From: Paramoeba atlantica
Taxonomy: Eukaryota > Protista > Discosea
Assembly (NCBI GenBank): GCA_977017575.1
Contig: CDRNVI010000143.1
Coordinates: 248,001-312,000, forward strand
Length of the DNA: 64,000 nucleotides
Reading direction: 5' to 3'
This document shows, one piece after another, positions 28,150 to 47,358 of this stretch (its first letter is position 1; each line of letters opens with the position of its first letter). Under the pieces are notes generated by a model. That model worked only from the letters and a program-made list of their open reading frames with translations, searched no databases and had not been told where the DNA came from. The position numbers and the translations under genes were made by a program.

Positions 28150-28271
28150 GTCTTCGGTCATACCCAGTTGAAAGCACCCGATCCCATCAGAACTCGTCGG
28201 AAGTTAAGCAGCTGTGGGCTCGGTTAGTAGAATGGTGGGTGACCACATTCGAATCCCGAGTGCTGAAGACC
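28150..28271 (+). rRNA. 5S: 5S rRNA
   Basis: GTCTTCGGTCATACC...GCACCCGATCCCATC...AGTTAAGCAG...GGTTAGTA...GTGCTGAAGAC; 5'/3' ends pair; followed by T runs. Confidence 0.93.
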
Positions 28272-28497: not shown

Positions 28498-28896
28498 AGT
28501 CAAAAAACAAAAACAACAACAACAACAACAACAATATGTGATCAATATTGAAACACCTTCGCAATCCCATCACCATCTTTTTTTTTTCTTCTCCCTTTTC
28601 CTTTTTCCTTTTCCTTTCCTTTTTTTTTTTCACTTCTGTTCTTTTTCTTTTTTTTTTCTTTTTCTTATTTCTTTTTTTTTTCCATTGTGAGAAGTCTTGG
28701 CTGAGGAGGGTGCCTCCCATCCTTTTGACATCCCTTCTTTTCTTGGGTTTTGAAAAGTTTTTTTCAAACCCAGATTTTTTTTCAAACCCCATACCATCCC
28801 AATCACAATCCAACAGCCACATGTGATTTTTTTTTGCAAAAAAATAAAAAAGGTTGACTCTTTGGCATGGAGGAGAAGGGCAGAAAAGAAAAAAAA

Positions 28897-29055
28897 TGGA
28901 CCGCGACAAAGCGCACGTCCACTCGACCACAAATTGCACAGCCAACAGCCTTTCAGCCTGCTGTGTACAAGGTCCCCTCCCAGATGTGCGAAGGAGAGGC
29001 CCAAGTACAGAACCAGCGCCTACTTGATCACGCCAATTCACTGCCAGGTAAGAAA
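28897..29055 (-). ncRNA. U1: U1 spliceosomal snRNA (5'-end variant)
   Basis: CTTACCTG, helix H (GCAG/CTGT), a 10-bp stem I with GATCAAGTAG loop (U1-70K-type), stem II with TTCGCAC loop, Sm site AATTTGTGG and terminal TGGAC/GTCCA stem; ~160 nt. Confidence 0.88.
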
Positions 29056-43234: not shown

Positions 43235-43597
43235 ATTTCTGAAAAAGACCCAATTTTTTGGCTTTCCAGTGGGAAAAATTTCTGGAGAAACAGAAAAACA
43301 AAATGAAAAACAAAGAAAAAGAGCAGAAAAAGGAAAAATACAAAAATGAAAAAAGTGATTGGAGACAATGAAGGAAAATCACTTTTTATTGTTAATTCAC
43401 AAAAAAAGGAGGAAAAAAACATCTATTATTTTTCATGATTTCCCAAAGACTATTTTTTTTCTTTTTCAAAGGGAAGGGAAAACCTTTTCAAAATTGAATG
43501 ATTTTTTTTTCATTCATTCATTCAAAAAAAGGAAAAGAAAAATGTTTTCAGTCCAAAAAAAAGAAAAAATTCAAAAACAAAAAAAAAAGAAAAAATT

Positions 43598-43681
43598 CGT
43601 CGGAAGCAGGATTTGAACCTACGCCCCGTTTCCAGGATGTGATTTCTAGTCACACGTCTTAGACCACTCGACCATCCCGAC
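43598..43681 (-). tRNA. tRNA-Ser-AGA: tRNA-Ser(AGA)
   Basis: TGTGA-CTAGAAA-TCACA arm; long variable arm; 84 nt. Confidence 0.93.
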
Positions 43682-44095
43682 ATTTCATAAAAAATGAGTG
43701 AAAAAAAGCAGAGAATAAGGAAAAAGAGCAGGAGAGAAAGAAAAGGGGCAAACCAAAAACAAGGGGGAAAGTGTCTGTAAAAGTTTGAAAAAAGTTTTAA
43801 ATTTCTTGAAAAGAGGAAGAACAGGAAGAAGAGACAGATGATAAAGAGAAAGATGGAGAAAAGCAGAAGGACAAAAGAAAGAAAGACAAAAGACTCAAAA
43901 TTTGACGGTCGAAATTTTGATTGACTTTTTTCTTTCAATGGTCGAAATTTTTGATGTTTTTTTCGACCATTGAAGTTATTTTTTCGACGGTTGGTGTTTT
44001 TCTTGGTTTTTTTTCGATGGTCGAAAGTTTGGACAATGGAGAGCTGAGGTGGGCAATGACATCAGCTAACTTTCAGGGTGTTGAAACCTCTCCAG

Positions 44096-46811
44096 CGACC
44101 AGGCTGAAGTTGCACCTGACATCAGATGTGACGTCAGATGTGACACCTTATTCCAAATAAAGGAAAGTGACACGTGTCGATTTTTTGTGGACTGTTTCAA
44201 AATCTGAAAATTGTATTTGCGTGAACTGTTTCGTGTTTTTTCTTTTTTTGTTTTTCGATTTTCTTTTTTCTTTTTGTTTGAGTTCTTTTTGATTTCTGAT
44301 CGTTCGATTTCATTACCTCTACCGAGAAGGTTGTTTTTTCTCACGCCTGGAAGGCAAAAAATGGCAGAAACCCAACAAAAGAAAAAGAGACAGCGTGATT
44401 TGGGATATTCTGAGAAGATTGATGAAAATCTTTTGAATCTTCGAAATGAAATTCTAAAACTTGAATCGAATATTAAACATAAGGAAACACTTGAAATGAA
44501 TCAAGTTGTTATCTTTCACAAATATGTTCTTGATATTTTTCGCTCTGATAAAACTGCAAAAGGGGTGACTTATTATTCTTGTCAAAAAACAGAAAGGAAT
44601 AAAAAACAAAACCTTCAAAGACAAGATAAAAAGTCTTCTTTTTCAAATCGGGACACAAAAGATGTGAAAATGACCTGTTCTGGGAAATTACACATCAATT
44701 CAACAAATGGGACAATTCAAGTGACTGGGCATTCTTGTAACAAAGAGTTCTCTTCTTCCCCTCCTATTGTCAAAGATTTTGTACAAAATTCTCTTTTGAA
44801 ACTTGATCAAAGTCAAGCCCCAAATGATGTTCTTCAAACAATGGTTGAAAAACATTTTGAAGGGACTGGTTTGATCACCCATCCATTGAAGTTGAGAAAA
44901 CTGATTTCCAATCAGTTTACTTCATTTAAGAAACAATGGTGGGCTTCAGGGGGTTTTGATGGTGCTGAAATAAAATTGAAAACAATGGAGGAAGAGATTT
45001 CAAATGTTGGTGTCTTGTGTCATCCAAATCAGAGTAAATATTCTGGGCGAAAATTATTAGTCTGGATTTATCACTCTGGATTGAATTTTTTAAAACTGTT
45101 ACTTGAAAAAGAATACCCCATTTTAATGAGTTTGGATACAACTCATGATGCAGTCAACAAAAAAGAATCCAAACAAACTTATTTGGCAACTCTGATGTTC
45201 TGAATGCCTGACACTCTTCAATATGTCATTTTAGGACAAGCACTCATTGAGGGTGAAGATTTGGTTTCCATCCAATTATTTTTAAGTTGGGTGTCAAATA
45301 TTGTGTCCTCTTCTTTTGAACCATTAATGATCGGCATTGATGACTCAAAAGCAGAGAAAGGGGCAATCAAGAAAGTGTGGCCAAATGCAAAAATTGCGAT
45401 TTGTGTTTGGCACCTCATGAGGACTGTTTCAAAGCATCTTGATTATAAGGTGCATCCAATGAATATTCCTTTCATTCAAAAAAGATTTGAGGAAACCCCT
45501 GACACTCTTGTTCTCTTTGACAAGCTCTCTGCTCTTGCTCAAAAAGCAATTCTAACCACCAATCCTGTAATTTGTCAACAATCAATCGATCAAGTTACAG
45601 AAATTCTAAATCAACAAATCAAAAAATGGTGGAATACAAAAGAGAACTTGAAAGCTGTCCAGAATTGGTGGGATGGCTTTGTTGCAAAAAAGGATAAATG
45701 GGCTCTTTCTTCTCGGATTCAAACAGAAGATAAAGTCCTTATTCATGCCTGTCTCCAAGAAAAATCAACAGGAAGGAGTGAATCTTTCCATTCCACTTTA
45801 AAAAAAGAACCTCATCTTTTAAAACAGAGTGATATGGTCCAATCTGTCATTCACATTGTGAATGCCACTCTGAAGTGGAACTTGAAATATTGTGAGAAGG
45901 TGAAATCTCTTTTTTTTGTGAGTGAGGGTCGATGTCGAAAATTTGACCAAAACTTTTCATTTTTTTTTGAAACTACACCGAAAATCCTCCAAGAGAAGAT
46001 TCGAGAAGAAATGCAGCATTTTTTGAAAATTGTCGAAAATGCTGAGAAAAAAGATTCTTCTTCAAAAGAGGTTGAAAAGGCAAAAAAAACACTCAAAAAA
46101 TGGAAATCAATATACCCTGATTTTGATGTCTTTAGCCACAGCTGTACAGTTGTAGAGGCTTTTGGAATACCATGCCACCACATGTTGGGTTGGGCACATC
46201 ATTCACAAAATGGTTGGAGACATTTGAATGATCCAAACTTTTGGAAGGGGAAACCTTTAATACTAAAGAAGATCTCCCTTGAAAATTCATTTTGTATCTT
46301 CTCTTCATGAGAAACCCCCAAATGCGACCCCACGCCACTTCTCTTGTTCTGGGGAAGTAAGGAAGAAGAATCAGAAAGAAAAAAGAGTGAAGGAGGTTGA
46401 TGTGGAGGAAAAGAAGGAGGAAGAAACTGAAAGAGAAGGAGAAAATAGAGGGAAGGAAGAAGAAGGAGGAAAAGAAGAAATTGAACCAGATTTAGACGGA
46501 CAAACAGGGAAATGAAAACGTTCATGCTTTCACAACCGAAACACAAATCTTCTTGTTGAGGGAACGCGAACACGAAAAAAACCAAGGCATCTTGAAGACT
46601 TTGGAATGTGAACTTTTTTTGAATAAATTTTCTTTTTTCTTTTCTTCTTTTTTCTTCTCTTTCTTCTTTTTTCTTCTCTTTCTTCTCCTTTCTTCTCTTT
46701 TTTTTTTCTCTGGTCCACCTTTTTTTTTCTCTTTTTCAAAACAAAAAAAACAAAAAAACGCGTCATAATTTGTCGACACCAGGGGGGAATGGTGCAACTT
46801 CAGCCTGGTCG
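44096..46811 (+). mobile_element. Mutator-like (MULE) DNA transposon, 2716 bp, 21-bp TIRs, flanked by an 18-bp direct repeat
   Basis: CGACCAGGCTGAAGTTGCACC at 44096-44116 and its reverse complement at 46791-46811; GTGTTGAAACCTCTCCAG at 44078-44095 and 46812-46829. Confidence 0.92.
44361..46310 (+). pseudogene. MULE transposase with SWIM finger; one in-frame TGA at 45201-45203
   Basis: SLDTTH (D1), GIDDSKAE...ICVWHL (D2, CxxH), SESFHSTLK (E), and SWIM-like HSCTVVEAFGIPCHHM. Confidence 0.88.
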
Positions 46812-46906
46812 GTGTTGAAACCTCTCCAGTGATCCGATTCAAACCCACAAATCGCCCCAACTGCAAGTGCAGCTTGAGCCCACCCCCATGTGTGGAGAAC
46901 TGTCAC

Positions 46907-46912
<6 letters not shown>

Positions 46913-46958
<46 letters not shown>
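46913..46958. repeat. (AG)n microsatellite
   Basis: Pure dinucleotide run. Confidence 0.9.
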
Positions 46959-46961
<3 letters not shown>

Positions 46962-47022
46962 CTCAACAAAATGAAACAACCCACCACAACACAACAGTTC
47001 TTTTTTGGTTTTTTCAACAAAT

Positions 47023-47094
47023 TCCCTTGTGGTGTAGTCGGTAACACGGTCGGCTTTCACCCGGTCACCCCGGGTTCGATTCCCGGCAAGGGAG
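47023..47094 (+). tRNA. tRNA-Glu-TTC: tRNA-Glu(TTC), copy 2
   Basis: Differs from the 33510 copy at one anticodon-stem position. Confidence 0.92.
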
Positions 47095-47358
47095 CTTTTT
47101 TTTTTCAATTCCTTTTTTTTTTCTGATGTGTTGTGTTGTTTCTTTTTCTAAATGTGTTCTTTGTTCCTTTTCTTTCTTTTTTTTTTGATAATCTTTCCCA
47201 AAGAATCAAGAACAATTTTTGAATCAAAAGAAGGTGAACCCCAAAGAGTTGATTTGAAAAAAAAAAAAGATATCTTTGAGTTTTGAACATCAAAAACACA
47301 AAACTGATTCAATTTCAAAAAAAAAAAGAAAAAAAAAGAAAAAAAAAAGAAAAAAAAA

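Follow-up and report, generated by a model that had tools for sequence, protein, structure and literature searches.

An insertion between two tRNA genes

The window, meaning the whole 64-kb stretch of DNA analysed here (C143:248001-312000), lies on a 439-kb contig of a 45.7-Mb eukaryotic assembly and carries an rDNA unit, 5S rRNA, U1 snRNA and about 16 tRNA genes; no stretch of it resembles human sequence. Between tRNA-Ser(AGA) (43597-43682) and tRNA-Glu (47023-47095), two genes whose arrangement recurs in L011 and L012, both empty paralogues, it contains an insertion bounded by perfect 21-bp terminal inverted repeats (TIRs). The left TIR, CGACCAGGCTGAAGTTGCACC, occupies 44096-44116 on the + strand, and its exact reverse complement, 100% complementary as read from the sequence, lies at 46791-46811 on the - strand. 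Both are adjoined externally by a perfect 18-bp direct repeat, GTGTTGAAACCTCTCCAG, at 44078-44095 and 46812-46829, the right copy being placed both by reading the sequence and by base-level alignment. A first-pass annotation of this DNA had described perfect 21-bp TIRs flanked directly by an identical 18-bp repeat, and both features proved exact when their coordinates were re-read. When up to three mismatches were allowed, each motif (TIR and 18-mer) occurred only twice in the 64-kb window, a two-match outcome seen for either in 0 of 100 dinucleotide-preserving shuffles. Among the 28 non-simple inverted-repeat pairs found within 12 kb of each other in the window, this pair alone has a flanking direct repeat of at least 5 bp.

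A G precedes each 18-mer (44077 and 46811), and the one at 46811 doubles as the final TIR base. Because this G is shared, the structure can be read in two ways: a symmetric 21-bp TIR next to a target-site duplication (TSD) of 18 bp, or an asymmetric 20/21-bp TIR next to one of 19 bp, counting G 44077 in the left copy. The element itself (44096-46811) is 2,716 bp long and contains a single long frame (44361-46310) with one TGA interruption. At its left end only, a subterminal tandem direct repeat, TCAGATGTGAC, is present twice on the + strand (44122-44144, as 44122-44132 and 44134-44144, with a 12-bp period); these repeats are possible transposase-binding sites. As judged from sequence, the insertion appears to be recent, since both the TIRs and the TSD are perfect.

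A further TIR-bounded element is found on the same contig, 80 kb downstream (L076:2101-6925); its TIRs measure 34 bp and its apparent flanking repeat 5 bp. Neither of the two ORFs in it that reach 150 aa gave a Pfam match, leaving a MULE identity unsupported for this element. Going by this apparent 5-bp flank, the host is not generally prone to long duplications.

Empty copies of the target repeat

Both flanks of the insertion consist of dispersed repeat sequence, of which the genome has at least 40 copies, and searches with the left (43700-44095) and right (46812-47250) flanks gave 63 and 41 genome matches, respectively. The left part of this host repeat, which is SINE-like and non-coding, spans 43901-44095, and the right part spans 46830-46895, after which come a (GA)n tract and tRNA-Glu. 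The copy in the window is without 25 bp after 44040 that are present in other copies aligned across that point. When the host repeat was searched for known RNAs in an empty paralogue, cmscan (E ≤ 1) and ARAGORN returned nothing at the site; on its minus strand, putative A/B-box-like motifs were seen by eye.

The target site was resolved through unoccupied copies of this repeat. At five long paralogous loci that are about 92% identical (C144:162265-163090, C170:168432-169245, C143:196881-197657, C149:409649-410471 and C143:402993-403776), the matches to the left and right flanks have exactly 18 bp in common, and the exact 18-bp overlap was also found at the short copies matched by both flank searches. 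The five long loci align over the full length of a synthetic empty site built from the two flanks and a single 18-mer. In a base-level alignment, at least 14 copies are continuous through the junction (...TTTCAGG GTGTTGAAACCTCTCCAG TGATCC...), and 12 of 14 hold exactly one intact 18-mer; the two exceptions are copy L018, with a 9-bp deletion inside the 18-mer, and copy L017, which is without 17 bases through the first G of the 18-mer. Genome-wide, the exact 18-mer occurs 22 times: two copies flank the MULE, and 20 stand singly at unoccupied sites. The empty sites are paralogous rather than allelic (about 92% and about 80% identical), and both junctions are defined to the base.

The 18-mer is thus target DNA and the direct repeat a true TSD, because the empty paralogues carry it once. 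The 18 bp (19 with the ambiguous G) are duplicated target DNA, not element sequence and not an att-type core. This agrees with the first-pass reading of the repeat as a TSD, for which a comparison with empty sites had been proposed, while the concern raised alongside it, that the 18-mer might belong to the element, is answered by the 20 single 18-mers in host-repeat copies without the element. The same annotation had pointed to a continuous open frame after removal of the element. As arithmetic this is true, but the frame is not a gene, the flank being non-coding dispersed repeat. A coding function of the flank was ruled out from the repeat copies themselves, which differ by indels of 25, 17, 14, 9, 3 and 1 bp, not all of them multiples of three.

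A transposase of the Mutator superfamily

The long frame encodes a transposase of roughly 649 aa with the MULE domain PF10551, split by the TGA into an N-terminal ORF of 280 aa (44361-45200, + strand) and a C-terminal ORF of 368 aa plus stop (45204-46310, + strand). The N-terminal part is 33% identical to residues 2-275 of an intact relative, P0055 (E 7e-36), and includes a zinc-finger-like C...C...HxC module (HSC in the alignment) at about residues 73-129, as well as the first predicted catalytic Asp, D259, in the motif SLDTTHD. The C-terminal part bears the PF10551 match and the rest of the DDE core, namely, in full-length numbering, D327 (IDDS), a C348-W-H motif and E474 (SESFHS), with a SWIM-like HxC...CxH motif (HxC-x9-PC-x-H) near the C-terminus.

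The earlier identification of the element as a MULE is upheld by the PF10551 profile, which scored 34.9 bits against the 368-aa C-terminal piece (gathering cut-off 27.6, E 2.1e-8) and was matched by 14 of 15 aligned family members. A PF10551 search of the genome, read across the stop, gave 41.3 bits over profile positions 6-98. The nearest neighbours by protein language model (Atlas) are MULE/SWIM clusters. Accessory zinc fingers of Mutator transposases are of the WRKY/FLYWCH type at the N-terminus and of the SWIM type at the C-terminus. Although Pfam zinc-finger families gave zero matches at E ≤ 0.1, the C...C...HSC and HxC-x9-PC-x-H motifs are nonetheless conserved among relatives. Neither transposase piece matched PF00872 (IS256 / Transposase_mut) at E ≤ 0.1, and the host is eukaryotic.

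The relatives also bear on the predicted active site. D259 is conserved among them, D327, S329, E332 and C348 are nearly invariant, and E474 is invariant in alignment A2, so that alignments of relatives show the conserved D, D and E of Mutator transposases together with the C-x-H that follows the second D. D259, D327 and E474 are accordingly the candidate catalytic DDE residues. On protein homology, the element is a divergent yet genuine Mutator-superfamily transposon belonging to a rare lineage. It is filed here as a variant within the superfamily rather than as a typical member, with homology as the criterion and TSD length as a descriptive hallmark; where that hallmark is 8-11 bp, 18 (18-19) bp was observed. 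A site-specific element (a Crypton, or a tyrosine or serine recombinase with an att core) was also considered and ruled out: the sole long gene encodes a DDE transposase, and the 18-mer is present in 20 element-free copies of the host repeat.

Copies and relatives

No second copy with ends was found in the 45.7-Mb genome in searches with the TIR (up to three mismatches, at which the left TIR is genome-unique), with both protein pieces, with PF10551 and with the DNA of the whole element. The genome does contain three end-less relics: one at C174:25044-25475, 86% identical and heavily G:C>A:T mutated, and a 126-bp fragment present twice on C156 (96%). The remaining whole-genome matches were T/C-rich low-complexity sequence.

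Outside this genome, a word-based protein search returned the element's own protein only. When 1.84 billion representative proteins were searched exhaustively, with relatives drawn from ENA, Logan, SRC and JGI, 34 scored E ≤ 1e-3, own protein included; about 11 of the 34 are clear relatives (E < 1e-10), the best being 40% identical. They include a multi-copy cluster (P0035, P0038, P0039 and P0046; 634 aa) encoded by no fewer than 14 ENA contigs, which reach lengths of 673 kb. Also among the relatives are P0055 and P0010 (47% and 67% identical) and P0008, a fragment that is 94% identical. No related loci were found in metagenome, viral or prokaryotic genome contig collections, and searching the metagenome contigs for the exact TIR gave zero matches. 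An unusual TSD is plausible in this setting, because the lineage is both rare and divergent.

Comparison with known elements

The first-pass annotation had regarded the short TIR as atypical for MULEs, a view that does not survive comparison with the literature: perfect 21-bp TIRs fall inside the 14-500 bp published for the Mutator superfamily, and TvMULE TIRs measure 20-38 bp (PMC6446971). TSD length is another matter, as published MULE groups with a recorded TSD have 8-11 bp (PMC6446971), and Muta1 and Muta5 show 8-9 bp TSDs over hundreds of copies (PMC5225508). TvMULE (Trichomonas), Phantom, EMULE and the Mucorales MULEs resemble the window element in having a single-ORF PF10551 DDE transposase, TIRs of 20-40 bp, zinc-finger or, here, zinc-finger-like modules and the TIR and TSD of cut-and-paste transposition (PMC6446971, PMC2725143), but they differ from it in their TSDs, which are 9-11 bp as against 18 (18-19) bp here. 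To these short-TIR MULEs the window protein is only distantly akin (Pfam E 2e-8), and among the 1.84 billion representatives no relative exceeded 40% identity over most of the query length. Muta1 of Aedes aegypti offers a parallel of another kind, with 12-bp subterminal tandem repeats by the terminal motif and TSDs that directly flank the TIRs (PMC5225508). Muta1 and maize MuDR, the functionally characterised members of the same superfamily, nevertheless differ from the window element in having TIRs longer than 100 bp and TSDs that are strictly 8-9 or 9 bp across hundreds of copies, compared with one copy here, bearing a 21-bp TIR and an 18-bp TSD.

In the literature searched, TSDs of 18 bp turned up for LINE and SINE cases only. 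We know of no eukaryotic cut-and-paste superfamily with a TSD longer than 11 bp. Among prokaryotic systems, TSDs measure 15-29 bp for IS1202 and 14-15 bp for casposons, and IS1634-type elements and some IS30-family elements also have long TSDs. IS1202-type insertion sequences and casposons show that a DDE or Cas1 integrase can be organised for long staggered joins; they differ from the window element in being prokaryotic, with enzymes that are unrelated or remotely related. The IS1202 family of prokaryotic insertion sequences is reportedly treated in PMC10132070.

Origin of the 18-bp duplication

The mechanism of DDE transposases constrains how the duplication can have formed. During DDE transposition, the duplicated segment is the DNA between the two strand-transfer points, and gap repair only copies it. 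By this mechanism, an 18-bp TSD places the joining points of the two ends 18 bp from each other. The first-pass suggestion of a repair-generated long duplication is hence mechanistically weak, since stagger rather than repair would set the length of a TSD; repair is an independent explanation only if the element was end-joined into a pre-existing staggered break. The idea offered with it, that 18 is 2 × 9, has arithmetic as its one support, and the 18-mer is not built as an internal repeat. Both ends of the element are intact and symmetric, as concerted transposase chemistry, rather than end-joining, would leave them.

We favour the reading in which an 18-bp stagger, about twice that of other MULEs, would be the normal geometry of the transpososome in this divergent lineage, and give it a probability of roughly 0.5. 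The element would be an autonomous cut-and-paste MULE, whose transposase binds the 21-bp TIRs and excises it. The 3' ends would then join target phosphates 18 (18-19) bp apart on opposite strands of the SINE-like repeat, and filling of the two 18-nt gaps would yield the target duplication, so that the transposase itself would have set the 18-bp stagger. This copy would later have been disabled by a single nonsense change at Arg281. Tentatively, we picture a divergent protist branch of Mutator in which the two active sites could well attack the target 18-19 bp apart, that is, nearly two helical turns. Against the lineage reading speak the single insertion in the genome, the 8-11-bp TSDs of all published MULE groups with a recorded TSD and the paralogous rather than allelic nature of the empty sites; a rare non-concerted integration would leave an identical product.

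That last point leads to a possible, if doubtful, alternative, a one-off aberrant event in which an enzyme otherwise making about 9-bp staggers carried out non-concerted strand transfers, or mis-registered its target, and left the ends 18 bp apart. The range of 8-11 bp in all characterised MULE groups (PMC6446971, PMC5225508) argues for such an event, although the family is very divergent from these groups and a stagger extrapolated from them is uncertain. The observation is a single one (n = 1), and choosing oddities for study enriches for rare events. Other DDE-type integrases reportedly produce rare long TSDs as well, HERV-K HML-2 being an example. Aberrant events are nonetheless expected to be rare, yet it is the sole surviving full copy that shows 18 bp, and both of its ends are precise and symmetric.

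Capture of the element by a process independent of the transposase appears improbable. Here an excised linear copy would have been end-joined into a break with 18-nt 5' overhangs, produced by nicks 18 bp apart and then filled in, which would explain a length outside the superfamily range with no change of the enzyme and would suit a site in a tRNA-dense, repeat-rich region. End-joining, however, usually trims or adds bases, whereas both TIRs are complete and symmetric and the junctions are clean when compared with the empty site; the pair of nicks that is needed would itself go unexplained. Still more remote, and very unlikely in our estimate, is an artefact, whether a mis-assembly or an 18-mer that is element sequence or an att-like core shared with the target. 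The recurrence of the 18-mer at 20 other genomic places could be taken to point that way, but 20 of 20 lie in host-repeat copies without MULE sequence or TIR, and the element encodes a DDE transposase, with no recombinase ORF noted. Nor would mis-assembly create so precise a TIR and TSD architecture inside a 439-kb contig.

Implications for classification and mechanism

Each transposon superfamily is credited with a fixed TSD length, which serves as a signature for classification and mirrors how far apart the two active sites lie on target DNA. Should the lineage indeed make an 18-bp stagger, the 8-11-bp rule of annotation pipelines would be broken, and elements of this kind would be missed or misclassified. 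A different oligomeric or target-bending geometry would be indicated, and the TSD would be the longest regular one among eukaryotic cut-and-paste transposons, providing a natural experiment on how architecture determines stagger length. A long TSD would also help microhomology to bring about precise excision, an effect demonstrated with the 8-9-bp TSDs of Muta1 (PMC5225508). If the insertion was instead a one-off, it would still cleanly document that a eukaryotic DDE transposase can integrate aberrantly with a wide stagger.

The interrupted transposase frame

The in-frame TGA at codon 281 (45201-45203, + strand) falls at an Arg position by alignment to relatives. In alignments with P0055, the two transposase pieces cover its residues 2-275 and 277-560, leaving out residue 276, which is R, and every relative with an aligned residue there has Arg, within the motif LM[FVI]R[MCSA]P[DN], except the divergent P0005. 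Because relatives carry Arg at the stop position, the transposase was disabled after insertion by a single nonsense change at Arg281, most likely CGA>TGA.

TGA as a sense codon was considered as well. Canonical Arg positions account for three of three TGAs in an HSP70 pseudogene on C181. Intact HSP70 genes of this genome are without internal TGA, in keeping with TGA as an ordinary stop codon. Since the TGAs of the pseudogene and the transposase are all at Arg positions while intact HSP70 has none, reassignment of TGA was ruled out. In the MULE relic on C174, the differences from the window copy are almost all G:C>A:T. The change at Arg281 fits a C>T type of mutation that probably erodes repeats in this genome, a pattern checked on three examples, namely the transposase, the HSP70 pseudogene and the C174 relic.

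The repeat that hosts the MULE and its other genomic copies

The Mutator-superfamily transposon (MULE) interrupts a dispersed, non-coding repeat of ~285 bp, whose window copy is split between positions 43901-44095 and 46830-46895 and whose paralogues include loci L011-L026. At least 40 dispersed copies of this repeat were found, often beside tRNA genes, and they share a highly conserved block of ~55 bp (GAGCTGAGG...CTCTCCAG), within which lies the 18-mer duplicated on either side of the MULE. Its minus strand carries A-box- and B-box-like motifs, which hint at a SINE, but neither cmscan nor ARAGORN found a tRNA in the repeat.

In two copies of the host repeat, bases are missing at the MULE target. 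L017 (contig C149 of assembly G000, ~582463-582508) lacks 17 bp, a deletion that extends past the left edge of the 18-mer by one base, and L018 (C144, ~178100) lacks 9 bp from within the 18-mer. These deletions could be old excision scars or could have arisen by chance; by a rough estimate, the probability of a chance coincidence is about one in ten.

A relic MULE fragment and an adjoining host-repeat copy on contig C174 (23836-25836; L005:300-2300) are strongly AT-enriched. Their differences from the window copies are almost exclusively G>A and C>T, a pattern of RIP-like or deamination-like erosion across the whole region.

A second element bounded by TIRs

The contig that holds the window, C143, also carries a 4.8-kb element (392600-397424; L076:2101-6925) with 34-bp TIRs that are 97% complementary, flanked by TTTCT as an apparent 5-bp repeat. 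It has two ORFs that reach 150 aa or more, neither with a Pfam match.

HSP70 genes and RNA genes

A cytosolic-type HSP70 gene on contig C181 (7025-8842; L054) contains three in-frame TGAs and is otherwise well conserved (832 bits). All three fall at canonical Arg positions (DAK-R-LIGR, FDN-R-MV and TRA-R-FEE), consistent with CGA>TGA decay in a duplicated gene. Elsewhere, identical intron-less HSP70 genes form tandem arrays with a spacing of ~2.37 kb (C71:298874-314893 and C46:59382-65940). The contig pairs C19/C43 and C46/C71, each sharing the same HSP70 genes, may represent haplotigs; alternatively, the assembly may combine sequence from two types of genome compartment or from two organisms.

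In a single 13-kb stretch inside the window, and among tRNA genes, lie one complete rDNA unit (15990-22812; 2.1-kb SSU, 5.8S and LSU), a 5S rRNA gene (28150-28271) and a U1 snRNA gene (28895-29055), an unusual clustering of rDNA, 5S, U1 and tRNA genes. A tRNA called by ARAGORN at 54666-54751 on the minus strand has a four-base anticodon (tagc) and no assigned identity; it scores 57.6 bits with the Rfam tRNA model.
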